Shown here: one piece after another, positions 11,000-64,000 of the stretch
Numbering within the stretch: the stretch's first letter is position 1
Layout of the letters: the number at the start of each line of letters is the position of its first letter
Assembly (NCBI GenBank): GCA_023213395.1
Contig: CM041465.1
Span: 89,783,741 to 89,847,740, forward strand
From: Cycas panzhihuaensis
Taxonomy: Eukaryota > Plantae > Cycadophyta
Reading direction: 5' to 3'
DNA length: 64,000 bases
Notes under the pieces: generated by a model
Told to the model about the DNA's origin: nothing
Databases searched by the model: none
The model's input: only the letters and a program-made list of their open reading frames with translations
Made by a program: the position numbers and the translations under genes

Positions 11000-11280
11000 A
11001 AGTTGTGTAGGTGCTAAATACATGAGATTATTCATAGATAGAGAAGATGCCAAACATGTGAGTGTATACGTAGATAGAGAAGATGCCACACATGTGAGAA
11101 TATACACAGTAAAGATGTCAAGCGCACAAGTGTATATACAAATAGAGAAGATGCCAAACATGTGAGAATATATACAATAAAGACATCAAAATGTGAGTGT
11201 ATACATAGATATAGAAGATTCCAAACACGTGAGAATATACACAGTAAAGACATTAAATGGGTGAGCATATACGCAAACAT
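11000..11280. repeat. Degenerate ~33-36 bp tandem repeat in the Copia-1 leader
   Basis: About 7-8 units resembling GAGAAGATGCCAAACATGTGAG(A/T)(A/G)TATAC..ATA. Confidence 0.8.
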
Positions 11281-12606: not shown

Positions 12607-13199
12607 CATGCATACATATACATATGTGTGTGTAAAAAACCATATGGTATATATGTCATAAGTATAAGGCCATACTCTTATAGCTTCCATGAGCATGTAC
12701 AAATGCTCATAGATGAACTCTCATAGTCACATCTTTATGCCCATGGAGTAGACTCATATCCCTCCCCATTCAAGTCTTTCCTAATATTAACAATCACCCC
12801 TATGATGGTCATCAAGAGCTATCATATCCTCCCTCTGAGCGATGATTGTAGGTGTGACACCTATCACGCCTATGAGGGCCATGCTTAGTCTTCAATATAC
12901 GCTAGCTAATTGATGGAATCTCACATCCACTTACTTGTAGGATGGTCATCATACATAAATGTTGCCTCTATGAAGAAAGTGACATTAAAGCCACCTTCCA
13001 CCCAGGATCTATAACACAAGGAGAATAGAAAGATGTAAATGAGGATGAGAAGGTTAAATTAGTTAAGCCTCCAAAATTAATCTCTTAATATTCATTTATT
13101 ACTTCATATATTACATAAATTATTGCCTCATATATATAGAAAAATAAATAGTCATGAGAGAGACAAGAGGGTATGTAAAAAGTAGGAATGTAAGCCATC

Positions 13200-16738: not shown

Positions 16739-16849
16739 TTTATCTTAAATATATTTCCTATCTACCTAAAGGTTTGTTAATATAGTATCCATAATCTTAA
16801 TATCTCCTTACCTGACTACCAGTAATAATTGAGATAATTTTGTCTAATG

Positions 16850-17196
16850 GCATACATACTTATAAGTAGTAGCTTAAGGACCTTATATACCCAAAGGTAT
16901 GTATGTTCTATTAAAGGCTTTACTACTTCCCTAATATTGTTGACCCACTTATGCCTAATTTATAGCCTAAATAATAGATCCTCATCTAAAGGCACACTTT
17001 TAACTAAGGTACTCATTTTTCCAAGTCTAACATGGTCTCTAAACTCTAAGGTTTATAAGGTATACACTTAAGTCTGCCACTCAATATAGCTAATAGCTAT
17101 TGCCCCCTATATAATACATAGAGATCGAAGAATGATAATAAGATGTGCAGGAGTGGTACCTTCAAGGGGCCTAACCATTCCCTTTGTAGGACTAGT
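16850..17196 (-). ncRNA. Degenerate copy of a conserved pre-gag structured leader domain (homologous to 62985-63400)
   Basis: The reverse complement shares colinear motifs with 62985-63290: GTTAGGnCCCnnGAAGnTACCAC, GTTTRGAGACCA..TAGAC, TGAGTRCCTT, TTAGGC.ATAAAT, AGTGGnnCAACAAT, AAAGCCTT, GGTATATA. Confidence 0.6.
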
Positions 17197-18309: not shown

Positions 18310-20399
18310 CTGTTTCTCCCCTAATATTTTTAAAACTATAAAAAAATAAAACTTAAATAGTGGATGAAAATTAGGGGAAAAATAAATAAGGATACAATCA
18401 AATATTTCTCCTTAATAAAGCTATGAAATCATAATTTAGCATTATAACTCAAGTCTAGATGCTAAGAGGATTAAAATTAGTGCTCATACTACCTAATTTC
18501 ACCAATCCTCTAGTAAATGGCAATAAGATAAATGTAAGAAGGTTGCATGACTTCACACTAAAAATAAATGATGCTATAAATAAATCTCTTGCATCTCCTT
18601 TGACTTCAAGCAATAATAAGATAGATGAATCTTAGTAATAGAGGACAAGAGCTTGAGTATCTTAGTTCTATCCCCAAGTAACATGCTAGTTCAACCTACA
18701 TTCTAATTGATAGGCTACCACAGTAGAGAGATGATAAAAAATAGAGAAATATATTAAATATCTTTGCCATCAAAGTAGTGGTATATGCATTAATGGAAGT
18801 TATGAGATTTAATGTCAAGAGCAATCTTAATATTTTCTTCTTTTCAATAGTAGCTCCTTTCTTCTAGCTAAGAAAGGACCTAAGTAATGATGAATTTCAT
18901 GTCATAAATCATATTTAGTACTAATAAATCAATCAAGAATCATAGTAATTTGAGAATGAATCGCAAGGATAAGTATTAATAACTATTAATTATTTTATCC
19001 AAACCCTAATAATTAATCAGTGAGAAAAAACAAACCTCTAAATCATTCTCATACTTTATAATAAAGAAATTAAACACTTGATTTATTTTCATCCTTGATG
19101 ATAAAGAAATCGAACCCCCAACCAAAGACAAAAACATAGTGTAATTATGAGATAATATGGAGCGTATCTTGGAAATGATACATTTGCTTATGGAGATTCT
19201 TTAGGTACCAAATCCACCCACTTTAGAAACGTTTCTAGGAAGGATTCTTATGTTCTTTAATATTATAATTCTATCACCTTAGAGTTGCTTTAGCTAAGTG
19301 AAGATTTTTGTGGTGACTTGACTTATTATTAATGTAAAAGGGATAATAAGCAACTAATAAATTGGAAAAATATGTGGAACATAACACTCAATGATATTAT
19401 GGCTTCCCTTCAGAACCAAACATGGAATTCTACACTGTTGGGTTTCTTAATTTAAGGTGTGGCCTTACTTGGAAAGATTTTTAGAGGATGCATCAAATGA
19501 AATAGCTACAGAGCTATATGGTCAACTTGCTTTGATACTAAGTGAAAGAAGAGGCATTAAATCCACCTTCCACTAAGGATATGCAATGCAAGGAGAATAA
19601 AAAAATAAAAATGAAGATGAGGACATCAAATTAATTAAGCCTCCAAAATAAATCTATTGGCATTCATTCATTACTTCAGGTATTACATAAGCAATTGCCT
19701 CACATATATACAAAAATGAATAGTTACAAGGGAGGCAAGAAGGTATATGAAGAGTTGATCATGCAAGGTGACTAGCGGCACCTTGTATGATCAATATTAT
19801 ATGTACATTACAATATGGTGTGGATATATGGGACCCCACAAGCATTAGGATCACCACTTACAAGTCATGACTAACCACTAACATAACTTCAAATACATTT
19901 ACAATTTATTTTATCATATTGATTTGATAAAGTAACTAACATGGCTTACTAACATAACTTTATATTTATAAAAGTATAATATATTATACATATCTACTAT
20001 TGAATTAATAAGCATATCATTAATTATTCCATCATTCTCATCCTTAGTAGCCTTTAGTTATGCCTCCCTCACTAATAATTGTGCCTTCAACTCCTAATAC
20101 ACATCTTGAGCTCACATGGTAAGTGCAAAATATCAAATAAGGAAGCCCAATAACTCAGGATCCCCCTCCTACTAAATAGGAGGCTCTCATGGGATGTACA
20201 CATATGGTAGAAGGGCATTAAGGGTCCTCCTCACTAGTGAGACCTTGATTGTCACCTCACATTGCATATAAACATATAGAAGTTAGTCATTTTATTCAAA
20301 AATATAATCAAAAGTCAAAAGTTATTAAAAGAATACAAGAACATGATCTAAATCAACAACATCTAAATATAAATAATTAATTATAGGTACCCACTAGAG

Positions 20400-26156: not shown

Positions 26157-26346
26157 ATAATATTTAATTATTAGTGTCACATCAATGCATACTAAGGATA
26201 GCACGCTTTCATCAAGACAGGAACTATGCATCTTCTTTAAATAAGATAGGCTCCATCCACCTTCTTCACCTATCCTGAAATCTATAATATATCTTGAAAT
26301 TACACCAACCATTTCTTATTGATGTCTATATAAAACAAGCTCCATC

Positions 26347-34236: not shown

Positions 34237-37200
34237 TGATGGATGTTAATGCATCAAGGTCATTTAATTAATTAGATAAATTATATGAAGGTGACTTTAT
34301 GTTAGCTAAGTTACATAATTAAATGTAATTTCATTTACATTTAAGTGTAATTTTGGGATCATGTCATTAGGTGGAAAACTCCTATGGAAACCCTTATGCA
34401 CATCCTCTAATATATAAGATTGAATGTGAAGGGGAGAGAAATAATTCTCACCTCTTATTTTTACATTCAATCTTATTCTCTCTATTTTATTTTTCTTGTG
34501 TGCCATTGCTTTAGTATAGTAGATTATGGCACTAGATCCTTCACCCAACAATTAGTATCAGAGCTATTGTTGATTACATTTTCCTATTAGGCTTACACAG
34601 ATCCATTGATGTCTCTCACTCATAATTCATATAAGGTTGAGAGCTTATTTGAGAGCTTTATTTTGCATTAAAGAGCTTTAAATTTTATTATTTTATATAT
34701 TATTGTATCTTCTATGTGTCTAGAATTACATAGGTAAAAAAGATTTATTTATGAAGTCATTTGAATGCTGAAACAACTCCAAACTATATTTTAAAAGCCA
34801 AAATTTTGTAAAAACAATTACAGTCTTTGATTTCAATGAAATTTGATATGCAGGGTTGTCTAATCAAGAGGAGTAATTTTATCTTTTGGAGCATCTTCAG
34901 ATTTAACTTGTAATAGCCACATTTGGTTCAAATATATTTTTTATCTATTTAAAAGATCTACTACTAATTTATTTAGTTCTAATTATTTTTTCTAAAATTT
35001 TTTAAGGGTTTTAGTATATTTAAATAAAATATCTATTTTAGATCTGGTCTCATTAAATTTCATTAAGTATTAAGTGTGAATTTCTGCAAAAAATATCCAA
35101 ATTCAAGCATGCAATTTAGGGTATTTTTCCTCAATGAAATTCTTTAAATCTAAGGTTATAATCTAAAAATTTTTTAAGGGCTTTAGTAGATTTGTGTCTC
35201 AAGAAAAATTTGAGACTTATTTCATCAAATTTCATCCACTAGTTAATGAGAATTTTATAGTTTTCTGACAAATGCTAATTTGCTTATTCAACCATGTAGA
35301 AACATTTTGAGGGCATTTCAAGTAATTTCTTAGCCATTTTTTGAGTTATTGTAGAAGGAAATTTTGATGTACATATCGAAATAAAGATTTTGACATATTA
35401 AAGTTTGGATTTTGAGACAATAAATCTGGTAAAAATGTTTTGTGTCTTTTTCAAAAATTTAACTTCACTATCTTATCAAAAATGTCATTCTGAGCACTTT
35501 TTTCTTCTATAATAAATTCAAATTCTATCATCCAGGCCTTCATATTTGTATTTTTTATATAATTCTACCCATTTATTATTATTTATAAATTTTGTGAAAT
35601 AAAATCATAAAATAGGAAAAAATAGCATGCTCTTAGATTTAACAAAATCATTATTTTAGTGGTAAGTTGATCTACTTTTTGGTCTTTTGTGGCTTTTGGA
35701 TTAAAATTTCTAAAATTATATTTAGAAACATTATACTAAAGTAAGGGAAACCTTGGATCAAAAGAAACATCTAGTTCTGCTACTAAAGCTAAAATATTCT
35801 TTCTATTTGTAGAAGGTATAAAGTGAACACATAAAATTGTAATAGCAATAAGCATGCATAGAAGACAAGCAAGTATTTGGCATCTTTCTATTTTATTTTT
35901 AAGTTCAAGTTATTTAAAAATAACTTGCACTCTTTCCTAAAAGGAATCTCATCTATATGTCTTATACCACTATCTTTTGACCTATGTGCACACTCACCTT
36001 AGTTAAAATAGACCATAATTGGCCAAAGTTTGAGCCCTAAGGGAGGTGTTGGTTTCATACAAGGTTTGTTCTTAACTAGAATAATGGTGGAGGGATAGAT
36101 TATCCATACATATGACCTCCAATCAGGGATAATCTTGATAACCACCTAGAAAAACTAAAAACTCTAATCAAGATTAAAATATAATTGATCCAATGTCTAT
36201 CATAGCCATGGGATATACGCGTACCACCTTTTGAGGTTAGGTATATCACTACTCATTAGTGAATGGGATGAGGACTAGCAGTACCTAGGCTCTATGTTGT
36301 CTCAATAATGGTGTAGGTATCATGGGTGAAGGCCCTAATATATATACTAGAATCCTCCTTAGGCATTGACACCTCAACTACTTTGGAATTTAGATAAAGG
36401 TTTGGGTTTAATCATATATCCTACATCACACTTGGTTTTTAGTTGTGTACACCCACATACTAGCTCCTACATGGGTATAATCTTAATTATATGATTACAT
36501 AACACATCATTTATCTTTGTGATCCTTATACTACCATTTGTACATATTATCATTGCCACTTATACATATCATCAAACCCTATTATGTCAGGAGTATTTTC
36601 CATAAATATTAGTGGCTTATTATCATTACTTGTTATTTAATCATATTTCCCCATACTATGACAGGTGTATTAGCCACATGCATTAGTGGCATTTTTATTT
36701 ATTATTTCTTCACTATCTCTTTTACTTCATCATCTTCACTATGTCTTCTAAGTTTAAGTATAACATGAACTTCATCTTGAAAGGGAAAGATAATTGGGAT
36801 CTATGGTATTCTAAAGTCAAGGACACTGCTATATACGAAGGCCTTTGGAGAGCCCATCTATAACGTACACCTATCATCCTTGTGATAACAACAACACCTA
36901 CCTCTAGAGGAACCCCACCTATAGCTCTAACAAATCCTATAGTTAAATTACAATGGCAAATTGGTGATGAGAATATTCGTGTAGGTATTCTATTGGTGAC
37001 TAATCACTTCTTAGAAAATCTAATTGATGAAGAACAATATGATATAACTTGGAAAGTCCTTGAGGTTCTTAAAAAAAAAATTGATGCAAAGTCTAACCTT
37101 GAATTTGTTCATCTAATCTTAAAGATTAACAAGATAAAGATGGAAAAGGGATATGCACCTTAAATAATCAACCTCTTTCAACCAATCAAATAAGTAATAG

Positions 37201-50852: not shown

Positions 50853-52196
50853 CATTCAACCCTACAAAAACATTATGAGAGCATTTCAGATAGTTTCTTG
50901 GCCATTTTTAGAGTTGTTACAAAAGGAAAAGCTAATGTACATGTCAAGATGAAGCTTTTTACATACTAAAGTTTGGATTCTAAGATAGTAAATCTGGTAA
51001 GATTCTACTTTTGTGCTTTTTATGGATAAAAATTTTTAATTCCATCATTTAGGCCTCTATATTTGTAATTTTTAGAAGATTTTACCTATTTAATATTATT
51101 TATAAATTTTGTAAAATAAAATCACAAAATAGGACAAAATTAGCATGCTTCTAGATTTTAAAAAATTAGCATTTTAGTAGGAAGTTAATATACTTTTTGG
51201 CCCTTTATGGATTTTGTATTGAAATTTTCAAAAATATATTTAGAAATATTGTACCAAAGTAAGGGAAACCTTAGATCAGAAGCAACATCTGATTCCCTTA
51301 TTAAATCTAGCATGCTCTTTCTATTTCCACACATAGCATAAAGCAATGCATAAAGTAGCAACAATAATAAAGTAAGCATAGAATGCAAACAAGCATTTGG
51401 CATCTTTCTATTTTAGTTTTCAATTCAAGTTATTCAAAAATAACTTACGTTATTTCCTAAAAGGAATCTCATCTGTATGACTTATACCATTAATTCTTGA
51501 TTTGTGCGCATACTTGCCTTAGTTAAAAAAGACCATAGTTGGTTAATGTCTAGGCCTTAAGGAAGGTATAAGTTTCATGTTGGGTCTAGTTTTAACTAGA
51601 ATAGTGGTGGAGGGATAGGTTAGCCACACCTACGGACTCTAATTAGGGATAATCTTGATAACCACCCAAGAAAACTAAAAACTTTAATTAAGATAAAAAT
51701 ATACCCAATTAAATATCCATCATAACTATGGGATACACATGTATTGTTTGATTCTTTAGAGGAGGTATATAGCTACTCACTAGTAAATTAGGTAAGGACT
51801 ATAAGTACCTAGGCTCTATTATGACTTAGATTTCATCATTAAGTATAGGTGTAGGCATCACATGTGAAGGACCTAATACGTATACTAAAATTCCCCTCAG
51901 GCATTGACACCTTAACTACTTTAGACTTGAGATAGAGGTTTGGGTTTTGATCACACATTCTATATCAGACTTGGTTTTTAATTGTGTGCACTCACATGCC
52001 AGCTTATATTTCTATTTGTATACATCATCAAACCCTATTGTGTTAAGAGTATTTACCATAAGTGTTGGTGGCCTATTATCATTGCTTGCTATTAAATCAT
52101 ATTTCCCCCTACTATTCTAGGTGTATTAGCCATACGTATCAATGGTATCTTCATTTACTATTTCTTCACTATCTTTTGTACTTCATTATCTTCACC

Positions 52197-58304: not shown

Positions 58305-59480
58305 TAGTAGATTGAGCAATAATTAATTTTAAGATCTAATTTACAATTACAACAATACCTCCATATATGCCTCTTTATTTTGAAGGATAAATCTTATAAT
58401 TGACTGCCCAAGGAACTAGACCCATACCAGGGGAAAAAAAGGCTATATATAAAACCAATCTAAGAATCACAAGCCAACCATGACTACTTGGATAAACTCC
58501 AATGAACCAATGGCATAAGTGTTGAAGGTAGTAGTACTTGTTATATTTGTAATAAAGTAACTTCCAAGAAATGTCTAGTTTCTAATAGCTCTACAAAAGC
58601 CACACCCAACATTTAAGCAACCATTACAGCTCCAAAGAGATTGGTTACAATCAAGTAGTACTAAATAGGTATATTCTACTTTATCTAATGTTTGATGTAT
58701 TTCAATAGTGGAAATAACAAGTGAGATAAAAATGCCGAATAAACTGGATAGGACTAGGTGTTTTCTTAAACGTTGATCTATAAGATTTAGGCCAAGAATT
58801 AAGCTAAGAGCATTCATTCCTATAACTATTAAGGAGAGAAACAAAGTTGTTTTATTTGAAACAAAACTAACCAACTCCACAATAGTGGGACTATAATATA
58901 TTACAGTATTGATACTAGTAAACTATTGAAATGTTTGAAGACCAACTCTAGTAAGTAAAACAAGCCTTATTTCCTTACTTTTAAAGAAGTCAAAGTATTA
59001 TACTTTTTCTTTCGAGTCCCTTTGTTGAAATTCTTCTTCAATTGTAATAAAAAGTTGATCAATCTCACTGTTCAGATGATGTGGTTCATATATTTTTTTA
59101 AGAATTAGAATAGCTTTAACTTACCTTCATAAAGAGCCAATGTGGAGACTCTGGTAAAAAATAACATCAACATAAGTTGTAGTATAGTAGGCAAACTTAT
59201 TATACCAAGCATCCAATGCTATGACTCTAGTAACTTAGTAAATGCTAGATTTATAAGATAAGATAGAAATTGCCTACAAGTGATCATTAACACATTTGTA
59301 CTCACTAGTGCTCCTCTTGTTTTAGAAGGTGAAGCTTCTACAATGTAAACAAGAGTAGTGATTAATGCCACCCCAACATCTAACCCTACTAGAAGCCTAC
59401 CAAGAATCAAAATATATGGACCTAGTGTAACAGCCATGTAGATTGATCCAATTATTAAAATAACAACAACTAAAAGTTTC
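58305..59480 (-). pseudogene. Intronless, truncated inositol transporter (INT, MFS sugar porter) retrocopy
   Basis: ORF 59219-59437 ([36 protein letters not shown]) and ORF 58575-58880, plus ESPHWLFMK, FQ*FTSINTVIYYSPTIV and GGI..VN*I..LIIAQ, colinear with plant INT proteins. Confidence 0.9.
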
Positions 59481-59697
59481 TATTCCAATGACAAAGGAGT
59501 CACATATAATAGAAGTAGCTCTTTTATGTCACCGTAGAATACACCACCTTGGATGGAAATACCCATGGCCATAGCCTCGTCTAGATTAACACTTTACTCA
59601 ATTACTTACCAAATATCTCTAATACAACTTCTTGAACCTTTACTGAGATCCCTGCATCCTTCAAGCAACTCTTGTAAGGATTTCTCATTCACTCAAT
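59481..59697 (-). pseudogene. Mitochondrial-type HSP70 fragment
   Basis: IE*MRNPYKSCLKDAGISVK|[49 protein letters not shown], versus mtHSP70 ..CLKDAG..VQ.IV.EIFGK.PSKGVNPDEAVAMGAA.QGGIL.GDVKELLLLDVTPLSLGIET. Confidence 0.9.
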
Positions 59698-60689
59698 TGT
59701 TGGGAATAATCCCAATGTTTGTGCACTAGAGCGCTTAGGGCCCCTCAAAGCCACCTTTGAGGGCCCCTAGGGCACCTTGAACTGATTCGTGGCTTGGGAC
59801 CAACCACTCACGTGAGGTACGTATTCACAGATTATTTATTTTTATATTTTTCAAACTAACCTTAATTGTTGTGCGGCTAGGGTGATGGCGCCGACGCCTC
59901 CCGAATCTCTATTTAAGGGTTGGGAATACCTCCACGGTGTTTATTAACACCGCCACTCTTTCGAAATCGCCGTTGTACTCAAGATGAAAGTGTCGTGATG
60001 TCACCTCTGCTCCTCGGCTCCATCATTTGGTATCGAGCTAAGTTGAGCTAGGTTGTCTATTTTTCGATTTTAGTTGCTCAAACGTCCGTTGGAACATAGC
60101 TATATATTTGCTCGTTGAGATTAGCGAGCTCACCGATCTGGAGAAGACGGTTCTGGATTCCATCCACTGTGGAGGAAGATCTCCCGCTCGGAAGTCTGCT
60201 CTTCACACGGAAACCAGGTTCTTCGTTTCATTTTTTTAATTTTTATAAATATTTTGATATATGCTCTTTACTTTGTACTTTGATCTTCTGTACTGGATTA
60301 TTAGCTCTCCTCAGACTCATTGTCTATTTTTTATTTATCATTTGTCTCAGTTGTCTCTCCTTTGATTTGGCTTGTACTTTATACATTGTCTGTTTCGTTG
60401 ATCACCTTTGAGCACCCATTTCAGTTGCGCCCTTTGGCATTCGTTCTGCTTCTTTCATTGTGTCATTGTGTGTTTGCATGCCTTCACCCCGCTCCGTTCT
60501 TTTGCCTATCCTCAGCGAGCCTATTTCTACATACATATTCCGTATTATTCATTATTTGTGCTTGTTATTATATATTCGCGTTCCGTGTGATCTGCATCCC
60601 GTAGCCCTCGCGCCCTCGCACTGTGTCCCCGTCTGTCTCGCCCTGACCTGAGAAGGCCGTCTCCATCTCCGTCTCCCTTCTGCTCTCTG

Positions 60690-61200
60690 TCTCGCTCTGA
60701 GACGCCAAGCTCTGAGACGCCAAGGACCCTGTCTCCGGCCCCTTATCATTTATTGTGCGGCCCCTTATCATTTACTGCGTCTGCGCAGCCTCTTTTTAGT
60801 CCGGGCCGTTGGGTTCGCCCGTCTCTCTTCAGCCTGTGCGAGATCCGTCTGCTCTCTGGCCCCGTTGGGGACGTTCGGCGCGTCTGTTTGTGGGTTTCTC
60901 GTGGTCCCGCCGTTCGGCGCGCTGCGTCGCCCTCATTCGCCTTAGCGCCTTCGATTTGCATCCTTTTGCCCGCCCGTGTGGACGTTCGGCGCGCTGCGTC
61001 GCCCTAGCGTTGCTCATTGCGTCGTACTTGAAGTTTAGCGCCTTCGCCCGCCCGTGTGGACGTTTGGCGCGCTGCGTCGCCCTACCGCCCTTCCCGTTGC
61101 GTCATACTTGAAGTGCACCAGTTTGTGTACTACTCGTTTCATTTATTGCTCTTGCTTGAAGTGCAGCATTTTGTGTACTATTCGTTTCATTTATTGCTCT
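60690..61200 (+). repeat. Cluster of short direct repeats in the young Copia leader
   Basis: CTCTGAGACGCCAAG x2; GGCCCCTTATCATTTA x2; (CGCCCGTGTGGA)CGTTCGGCGCGCTGCGTCGCCCT x3 plus a partial copy; 48-bp CTTGAAGTGCA..TCGTTTCATTTATTGCTCTT x2. Confidence 0.9.
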
Positions 61201-62984
61201 TATTGTAGCTCTTATATTCTTGTATATTTCTGTCCGGTCATTGTATATCTTTACTCTATTTCAGTTATTGCATATATATTGGCACGTTGATTTACGTCAT
61301 TATTTGGCACTTTGTTGTTACAGTTTGAATAATTTTATATTTTTTGTTTTAAAACTTGACGAGCGAGTTCACCCTCCTGGCATCGGAGGTTTTCTGTTAT
61401 CTGAGTGGTCTCGGGTTCAATCCCAGCCCAGTTCAGTTTCAGACTGTTTTTTAAAGAAGTTTTCTCATTTTTAAACCTTATTTTTTTAAATTTTTACTTT
61501 TTCATAGGCTTATTGGCGCATTTTTTGCCATAACTTCCCCCTGGCTCATCGGTTTCAGACGAAACCTATGCCATCAGATCAGAAATTTTCCGTAAATCAA
61601 TTTCGACTGGTCATAAGACCAATTTGGTGCCCATTTGACCTCGTTTCACCCCTTTTAACATTGGACTTTCGAAATTTCAGCGTTTTTTGCATTTTTAATA
61701 AAATCGGTTTTAGAACTAGCTGCTATTTACTTTTGGTAAACTATTTTGTATCCAAATTTTTCTATAAGTAATCTACGTCATATAAACTCTAATACCCATC
61801 TTTTACTTTAATTTTTTGACTTCATTTTCACTAATATTTTAATCGTTAAAATAAGAAATTTAGTTGATTTTGCTGTTTCTTGAACATTCTCCATAAAGAT
61901 ACTTATCACTTTTTCACTATAACTTTTGCAATTTTTATCGATTTCATTTCCATCGAGTTCGTTGGGAAGTGACTCATTTCTCTTCACCGTGATATATTTT
62001 TTCATATATTTTGACATATTTTGCTTATATTTCAAATCGCCTAAAGGTGAGGTATTTTATTGGCCTAAATCGCTTCTTTTACACTGCTTAATATATTCTT
62101 TCAAAATTTTCAATTGGAAGAATATTAATTACTTCATCAATAATATTTGATCATTTGTTCAGCTTTTCTAAGGATTAATTAGTACTTTTATACAAGTTTT
62201 TGCCTACCCTGCTCCTGTTAGGCTCCATAAGGAGGTCCTTTCCTTTGGCTCATTCAAAACGTGACTTATTGGTATCCTTTTTCAAAACCGTCTATCTTAT
62301 TAGATTCACATTTCAGCAATCTACATATTGATAAAATTTTAAGCTATTCTGACCTCATTCAATATCGTTTTCAATCTGTTAAAGTTAAGTATATATATTC
62401 ATCCTAACAAGCTTGTCTTCCTTTCAAAAATTGTAAAGAAAATTCTAGTCCATATTTTCCTTGTTTACTTAAAGTTTTTTGCTTGATCTTTCTACAAGCA
62501 CTTTACATTATTTTGAACAAGTATTTATTTATAAGGCAATACATAAAAGTAGTTCTTAAAAGAAGTTTTTTTACATTGAAGATTTATTATTCATTTGAGA
62601 AATTGGCATCTGTTTGAAAACTATCTATTCTCAAAAAGTTTATTTTTAAATCTTGCATAAGTGAAAAGTTTTTTAGCATCATTACTTCCTTTTTTGATTA
62701 AAAGTGTATCAAAGTTCTTCTTTATTATTGGAAAATATCATCCTTCTTGCACTTATAAAAGAAAAATTGCATTTCTTTTCAAAGGCATCTTATATTTGTT
62801 TGAAGGACATTATATTTTTTTTTTTTAAAAAGCAAAAAGAGTTTTTGTACAAGTTTTCATTTCATCTTGCTTAGAGCATTTTTTTTCTATTATCAAAAGA
62901 ATTTTTCTCTTTCTAAGCAAGACCACATTGCTAAATAGATTAGTTTTCACATTAAATAAGATAAATCGAATTGAATCACACTTT

Positions 62985-63400
62985 TTCCGGCCTTGCAAGG
63001 GCAGTTAGGACCCACGAAGTTACCACCAAGACACGCTAATCGGCCTACTCATATTGGATGAGGACGACCATTAGCCATCAGTGTATACTGGCGGTGAGGT
63101 GCGAACCTTTCTTTTTATGGTGTTTGGAGACCAAGGCTAGACACGGAGAGGGTGAGTGCCTTTGGTTCGAGAACCTTCACCGCTAGATCCGTCGTTAGGC
63201 ATAAATCCGTAGCAGTGGACCAACAATTCGAGGGGTGTCAAAGCCTTCTTAGACCCCACGTCTTGAGGTATATAGAGCCTGGCGCCAAGACTGAGTATAA
63301 AGGGTCCCTGTTTTGCCATCCGTGGGCGCCATTGATGAATAAGAACCGAAGGTTTCAGGAGAAACATAAACTTAGAGCCTAGTAGCCTTTCTAGGTCCTA
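62985..63400 (+). ncRNA. Candidate large structured cis-acting RNA upstream of gag
   Basis: GC-rich island in AT-rich leader with many nested complementary segments (listed in findings) and a homologue at the same position in Copia-2. Confidence 0.65.
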
Positions 63401-63539
63401 GTTCATTTGTTCAAACTTTTGAAAACCTTGGGATATATATATTTGGAGATAATCTCTTTCATTTTAAGTTCTTTCAAATTTTCTACATTCAAATATTTTG
63501 CTATTGCATTTATCATATTTTATACAACCTTAATTTAAA

Positions 63540-64000
63540 ATGACATCTAGTTTTGGGAATATGATTATTCCTAAGTTTGATGGAAATAATTTTCTTAACT
63601 GGAGTAGGAGGATGAGGCCCATCCTCATAGCAAATGAAATGTGGGATATAGTGAGAAATGGTTACAATGACTTAGGATCAAATCCAATCTTGAAAAAGCT
63701 ACATACAAAGAAAATATCAAAAAGATAATGAAGCCTTAGCCCTTATCTTTTGCGCTTTGGAAGATCATGTTTTCCCAGCGTTAGTGAATCCATTAAGTCC
63801 AAAGAGGCTTGGGATACTTTACTGACTTATATCTGAAGGCGCGTCCTCTAAACTACAAAACTTAAGAAGTAAGTTTGAAAATTTACGTATGATGCCTCAT
63901 GAATCAATAAGCGAATTTATGACCAAGATTCAAGACATAGTTAACCAAATGAGGTCCCTTGGGGATACCTTAACCGAACAAAGAGTTGTTGAACGAATCC
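63540..64000 (+). CDS. Copia gag N-terminus, with several apparent 1-nt frameshifts
   Basis: MTSSFGNMIIPKFDGNNFLNWSRRM..MWDIVRNGY; shifted frames continue DNEALALIFCALEDHVFP, EAWD, and KLQNLRSKFENLRM..ESISEFMTKIQDIVNQMRSLGD. Confidence 0.85.

Follow-up and report, generated by a model that had tools for sequence, protein, structure and literature searches.

Two Copia retrotransposons of Cycas panzhihuaensis that differ in their LTRs and in the DNA of their gag genes carry, shortly before gag, a common non-coding block of about 330 nucleotides, and comparison of the two sequences places the homology of this block beyond doubt. The block is conserved and probably constrained. The explanation that we tentatively prefer is that it forms the conserved core of the element's own leader, positioned beside gag and acting in cis on the genomic RNA in the manner of a packaging signal. 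A more solid result than the role of the block is the leader in which one of the two copies lies, which extends over 3.5 kb and is nearly purged of AUG, a sign that ribosomes may reach the start codon of a plant retrotransposon by scanning an unusually long way. Both elements, referred to here as A and B, lie in the window, which is the whole stretch of 64,000 nucleotides that was analysed, and their parts are as follows.

59698 to 60025, + strand: 5' LTR of element A, 328 bp, TG...CA, with TATTTAA at about 59910 (from reading the sequence)
60028 to 60038, + strand: primer-binding site (PBS) of element A, TGGTATCGAGC, after the TT that follows the LTR
60042 to 63539, + strand: untranslated leader of element A, about 3.5 kb, ATG-depleted on the sense strand
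60336 to 61337, + strand: low-copy, cargo-like insert in the leader of A, GC-rich (50% GC) and pyrimidine-rich
62992 to 63322, + strand: conserved block, copy A, about 330 nt (alignment to copy B; nhmmer)
63323 to 63539, + strand: spacer between block and gag of A, unlike that of B, with one weak-context upstream ATG at 63335 (15 codons)
63540 to 64000, + strand: start of gag of A, ATG at 63540, with frameshifts and stops, extending beyond the window end
16850 to 17190, − strand: conserved block, copy B (alignment to copy A), 36% GC
19529 to 19540, − strand: PBS of element B, TAGTATCAAAGC, decayed
12971 to 13183 and 19543 to 19755, − strand: LTR pair of element B, 79% identity

Homology of the block in two Copia elements

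Element A is a young copy, with CpG at 0.7–1.2 of expectation along its length and at 0.74 in its block, and the start of its gag matches DUF4219 (5.6e-8) and Retrotran_gag_2 (5.9e-8) in Pfam. Its LTR begins at 59698, a position which in contigs from other runs coincides with a contig boundary, loose ends and the onset of high-copy depth. The PBS TGGTATCGAGC matches the canonical Copia tRNA-iMet PBS, TGGTATCAGAGC, minus one base. The segment directly upstream of the LTR (59000–59697) contains several pieces that are about 85–90% identical to well-covered contigs, from two runs guessed to be RNA; these matches stop exactly at 59698, and we regard the segment as host-mRNA-like fragments in the leader of a preceding element, the insertion target of A. 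Element B is an old, heavily deaminated copy (CpG observed/expected 0–0.18; 1 CpG in its block against 10.7 expected), with a leader of 2.8 kb and the gag ATG near 16746. The order of PBS, block and gag is identical in A and B.

The first-pass annotation had placed a colinear homologue of the block on the minus strand before the gag of element B, which it named Copia-2, and had seen no likeness between the remaining parts of the two elements; both observations hold. Local alignment of 62992–63322 (+) with 16850–17190 (−) gave a colinear match with a score of 76.5, against 21.5 ± 3.0 for 500 dinucleotide shuffles (maximum 33; z 18.5), and the best score among about 600 other window segments aligned in the same way was 30. 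When element A was compared with element B by nhmmer, the block was the sole match reported (E 9e-5). The LTRs of A and B showed no similarity, and neither did the gag DNA (z 0.5) or the spacers between block and gag (z 0.5). The blocks are 68% identical over 296 aligned bases, in a comparison that rests on two copies of which B is heavily deaminated, and 31 of the 94 differences are C>T or G>A in B, the two commonest classes. Since about one third of the differences thus match CpG loss, the blocks of A and B were more alike when B inserted. As for the best-conserved words named earlier, chance alone is expected to give identical runs of 7–8 bases when two sequences are 68% identical.

In both copies the block has discrete ends. 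In copy A it runs from TG at 62994 to CA at 63318, and the homology between the copies terminates at a common TGCCAT, about 20 nt past the last TATA-like word; from the end of the block to the gag AUG the distance is about 220 nt in A and 105 nt in B. The earlier description of copy A as a GC-rich island some 3 kb into an AT-rich leader and upstream of gag is correct: its GC content is 51%, against 29% in the surrounding leader, the PBS lies at 60028–60038, and the island ends about 220 nt before the ATG at 63540.

A third copy was not found in the window, whether by blastn, by nhmmer with a single sequence or a two-sequence profile, or with covariance model R1 with filters off. A pattern scan for the block gave no match in viral contigs, and in the metagenome one chance match only, on a bacterial contig (L001) beside a ychF-like gene. 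A protein search with the N-terminus of gag returned distant proteins only (at most 46% identity); gag of A was used in searches as unbroken pieces only. In another Copia family TACCACC, CTACTCAT and GGATGAGGAC precede gag, at 36223–36285 (+) and in a duplicate near 51700, in the order in which they occur in the block at 63020–63070. Alignment of the pre-gag region of this family (35980–36480) with the block is not significant, with a z of 3.1 and a best shuffle that outscores the real alignment.

Several possible identities of the block were considered and set aside. Translated comparison of A with B (tblastx) gave nothing and no Pfam domain matches the 76-aa ORFs of A, so that the block is not a protein-coding fragment and an overlapping ORF, named earlier as a trivial explanation of the conservation, does not account for it. 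A tRNA or SINE-like origin is ruled out, ARAGORN calling no tRNA; derivation from the LTR is rejected as well, alignment to the LTR of A yielding AT-rich low-complexity matches only. The block is not a solo LTR or MITE either, there being only two copies in the window and none near the 3' LTR of B. Reading of the sequence at the flanks of copy A revealed no target-site duplication, and the terminal inverted repeat is not retained in B. A search of the whole window against Rfam 15 gave no match at the gathering threshold, with hammerhead, HDV-like, twister and other ribozymes, IRES families, snRNA, SRP and tRNA-like RNAs included, and around copies A and B only chance-level matches appeared (E 1.7–6.2), none of them on the core of the block. 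The suggestion that the block could be a ribozyme thus met with no match to a ribozyme or any other Rfam family.

Folding of the block

The following features within the block are relevant to its possible structure and function.

63088 to 63186, no strand assigned: inverted repeat of copy A (helices H4/H5), CTGGCGGTGA/TCACCGCTAG and CGAACC/GGTTCG
63095 to 63164, + strand: candidate extended hairpin, apical stem 63120–63127 with 63137–63144, loop AGACCAAGG containing GAGACCA
17004 to 17071, − strand: counterpart of the extended hairpin in copy B, covariance model R1 score 97 bits
63221 to 63227, + strand: CAACAAT, conserved in the alignment
63267 to 63275 and 63296 to 63301, + strand: TATA-like words (GGTATATAG and TATAAA), in both copies

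The complementary words from which the first-pass annotation had built a single large closed multibranch domain are all present in copy A, and most of them are recovered by RNAfold. The domain itself did not stand up to comparison with shuffled sequences, the check that had been proposed for it: the minimum free energy of the 416-nt fold is −125.7 kcal/mol, against −125.2 ± 6.5 kcal/mol for dinucleotide shuffles (z −0.08 on the + strand; z −1.1 on the opposite strand). Conservation of the architecture is not seen either, with B retaining 32 of 61 pairs where about 24 are expected by chance from composition and slid controls retain 14–27. The helices that B has lost are H4, H5, H7, H8 and the closing stem; of the terminal complementarity of A that forms this stem, 2 of 9 and 2 of 6 pairs are left. 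The RNAalifold consensus of the two copies over the whole block has a z of −0.7. A large closed structured RNA, demonstrated by covariation, is not supported.

The strongest fold of copy A lies at 63085–63190 and includes the inverted repeat. It is equally strong on the two strands (z −3.5 on +, −3.9 on −), its equivalent in B has a z of −0.4, and the pairs of H4 and H5 left in B are 3 of 10 and 4 of 6, all of which points to a palindrome of copy A at the DNA level rather than to a conserved RNA helix. The two GGCGCC palindromes reported earlier are indeed present in A; they are absent from B, and the first of them is private to A, with position 63281 reading A in every overlapping contig from three runs (i.e. 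G>A). A conserved palindromic loop of the kind used for kissing-loop dimerisation was therefore not found, GGCGCC being absent from B and the G at 63281 private.

More attention is deserved by the extended hairpin at 63095–63164. All 19 of its 19 pairs can form in both A and B, with three two-sided (compensatory) and five one-sided changes, a count made on the same two sequences from which the structure was derived. The change from GTG/CAC to GAG/CTT that had been noted in the part at 63120–63144 is real. The alifold z is −3.2 on the + strand and +0.24 on the − strand, and the hairpin is restricted to the sense strand because it relies on G·U pairs. When 15 segments were scanned on both strands (30 in all), the best result was equalled by 2 of 200 shuffles, which is not significant after correction. 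The predicted hairpin is only suggestive, and we treat it as a lead rather than a finding.

The AUG-depleted leader and the start of gag translation

On the sense strand, ATG occurs 6 times in the 3498 nt of the leader of element A (60042–63539), whereas 500 dinucleotide shuffles gave 44.5 ± 5.4 (minimum 30). None of the other 63 trinucleotides is as depleted (observed/expected 0.14 for ATG, 0.65 for the next lowest), CAT, the complement of ATG, is in slight excess (87 versus 67), and no other stretch of the window, which has a median ATG observed/expected of 1.18, comes near this depletion. The limitation to one strand and one trinucleotide indicates selection and not composition. Also the low-copy insert at 60336–61337 has 1 ATG where 14.5 are expected, and the purge suggests selection, among captured leader sequences, for those without start codons. 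All six upstream ATGs have a pyrimidine at −3, a weak context, whereas the gag ATG has an A at this position. Most simply, ribosomes would scan the LTR-initiated RNA of A from its cap along the whole leader to gag; translation of gag would most likely be cap-dependent, by leaky scanning through the AUG-purged leader. A comparable situation exists in the pregenomic RNA of RTBV, where 900 nt without AUG are thought to permit leaky scanning (PMC5902531). Leader A resembles it in the strong, strand-specific absence of AUG before the main start and in the weak context of the few upstream AUGs; it differs in being about four times longer, in being non-coding, and in belonging to a Copia retrotransposon, and the likeness applies to the leader, not to the block.

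Two short upstream ORFs, one of 4 and then one of 17 codons, are present in R-U5 of A (59984–60051, +), the second starting on an overlapping stop (TGATG) and ending just beyond the PBS. Placed before an AUG-free leader, this pair is a possible reinitiation set-up. In U5 of B a 17-codon upstream ORF also occurs (start tgATGtc, 19626–19573, −), and its likeness to that of A may be a coincidence.

An IRES, or another cap-independent element that bypasses the long leader, was proposed earlier on the premise of a multi-kb leader rich in upstream AUGs, and this premise is contradicted by the 6 ATGs of leader A, against 44.5 ± 5.4. We consider this function very improbable. Like the IRESs of viruses and retroviruses, the block is found upstream of gag in a long leader, in elements whose leaders measure several kb, and leader B as it exists now is full of AUGs (52, without depletion). 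Those AUGs, however, belong to an old and deaminated copy. Leader A, with 6 AUGs instead of 44.5, all in weak context, and a gag AUG with A at −3, shows the signature of scanning and is built for it, so that no IRES is needed in family A. Moreover, in contrast to such IRESs, the block has no global structure signal, and it ends at variable distances from the AUG (220 nt in A, 105 nt in B) with unrelated spacers in between.

The AUG depletion also bears on the main rival to an RNA function, namely that the block is regulatory DNA, either an internal Pol II promoter for a short gag-pol mRNA or an enhancer that serves the LTR promoter through host transcription factors. The block is a GC- and CpG-rich island within AT-rich DNA, it contains CAACAAT, GGTATATAG and TATAAA in sense order with the homology stopping some 20 nt later at TGCCAT, and a start there would imply 5' UTRs with few AUGs, about 220 nt long in A and 105 nt in B. 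The strongest symmetry in A is strand-independent, i.e. a palindrome, and binding of host factors would explain the occurrence of the block in families with unlike Gag proteins. Precedents can be found in the second TATA box of BARE, which gives the translated RNA pool (PMC3735527), in the internal promoter of foamy viruses (PMC5902531), and in a leader enhancer of Drosophila copia, cited in PMC2829016; the block shares with these its position downstream of the LTR start, the TATA-like words and the CpG-rich island. What sets it apart is the AUG-purged leader upstream, which speaks for the LTR transcript as the mRNA: purging the whole 3.5 kb would be pointless if the translated mRNA began at about 63300, and an internal promoter near that position is unnecessary. 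The identical runs of 7–8 bases are at chance level and TATA words are common in DNA of 30% GC, the palindrome is missing from B, and the TATA-bearing half of the block has a lower depth across families than the 5' half in the contigs of other runs. On balance, we judge a DNA-level function rather unlikely.

Variation between copies and the role of the block

Contigs from other runs show that the family of element A is very abundant in one sequenced organism, with a summed contig depth of 20,000–160,000. The peak of about 160,000 falls in the bin 63008–63174, in the 5' half of the block, versus 39,000–65,000 beside it, and delimits a core that is about three times more abundant than the rest of element A.

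63031 to 63162, + strand: most widely common core of the block, at the depth peak, with many contigs breaking at 63031 and 63162

The insert at 60336–61337, on the other hand, has a depth of 0–140 versus 6,000–60,000 in its flanks, and is nearly missing from the run that is so rich in the rest of the element. It contains internal repeats, with GGACGTTCGGCGCGCTGCGTCGCCCT occurring about three times. One DNA contig from another run joins the PBS (60034) to 62016 via 25 unrelated letters. To judge from this joint and from the near-absence of 60336–61337, copies differ in the sequence adjoining the PBS but keep the gag-proximal part fixed. Where the high-copy part of the leader begins, a GC-richer patch (61360–61440, +) has a tRNA-like word, GGTTCAATCCC, at which ARAGORN calls no tRNA. 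Divergence from the window, measured on the longest pieces from two other runs, was as follows.

63195 to 63637 and 63264 to 63822: block, spacer and start of gag, about 6%
61400 to 62456: AT-rich leader, about 14%
LTR/PBS and part of gag: about 5%

The lower divergence of the pre-gag segment suggests constraint, in a rough comparison of pieces that may be of different subfamilies.

These data should also be considered in view of the explanation that the block has no function of its own and, through shared ancestry or as an abundant sequence captured twice, hitch-hikes in both leaders. Its discrete ends in both copies (TG at 62994 to CA at 63318 in A) are like those of a captured unit, the leaders do gather foreign sequence, as seen with the 60336–61337 insert and the 60034/62016 joint, the core is some threefold more abundant than the remainder of the element, and no structural signal is left after correction. 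Against this stand the same position and orientation beside gag in two families, and a divergence of roughly half that of the neighbouring leader in the contigs of other runs. A source was not identified by coding potential, tRNA or Rfam searches; target-site duplications are lacking and the terminal inverted repeat is lost in B. A functionless block is in our opinion an improbable explanation.

The preferred explanation, a conserved leader core with a cis-acting signal, can be envisaged as follows. In Copia elements with a long leader, variable and partly copy-specific sequence would adjoin the PBS, and a segment of about 330 nt with a family-specific spacer would remain by gag. Our inference is that the full-length, LTR-driven RNA carries this segment as a cis-acting signal of the packaging or dimerisation type, which would be composed of local hairpins, with 63095–63164 as the best candidate, and not of one closed domain. 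Packaging and dimerisation signals of retroelements are located between the PBS and gag, and this is where the block is found. The block is the only significant similarity in the 5' regions of A and B, its candidate hairpin is specific to the sense strand, its divergence is low and depth is highest at its core; in addition, the AUG depletion implies that ribosomes scan the LTR transcript through the entire leader, the block included, which we count in favour of an RNA role. Arguments against such a role are that the hairpin fails the correction for 30 scanned segments, that the fold of the whole block gives no signal, and that there are two copies only. A packaging signal is, furthermore, expected to co-evolve with Gag, and the Gags of A and B are very different.

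Known PSI and DIS signals of retroviruses and LTR retrotransposons offer a useful comparison, since conserved signals for packaging/dimerisation are reportedly common to BARE1 and its parasite BARE2 (PMC3735527). The resemblance lies in a non-coding segment between PBS and gag that is common to otherwise differing elements and in which local hairpins are possible. The differences are that the present block is common to families with very different Gag, that it lies 3 kb from the PBS, and that it has no conserved palindromic loop.

LTR retrotransposons are known to recombine during reverse transcription (reviewed in PMC6894440), and the segment may have been transferred between Copia families in this way, as is suggested by its being far more alike than the neighbouring gag. 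A discrete block at the same place that is so much more alike than gag is consistent with exchange by recombination or, alternatively, with very strong constraint. Should it prove to be a cis-acting leader signal common to both families, it would define the least that these very abundant plant Copia elements have to retain beside gag while their leaders gain foreign sequence, and it would offer a handle for finding families that exchange parts. One may go further and picture the block as a mobile leader cassette, exchanged by recombination among unrelated LTR-retrotransposon families, that works via host machinery or RNA signals, sustains gag expression and RNA replication, and leaves room between PBS and gag for several kb of captured, AUG-purged host sequence as cargo. 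This extended proposal is a long shot; if it were true, the element would be organised like a natural retroviral vector.

Other repeats were noted elsewhere in the window. At 26338–57428 one LTR occurs in five copies, 7.4–7.9 kb apart, and alternate internal regions recur as duplicates at a spacing of 15.45 kb; the arrangement is a tandem LTR-internal-LTR array and not a series of separate insertions. Near the 3' side of the neighbour of element B, at 11017–11277, a unit of about 67 nt is present in four tandem copies that are 62–79% alike.
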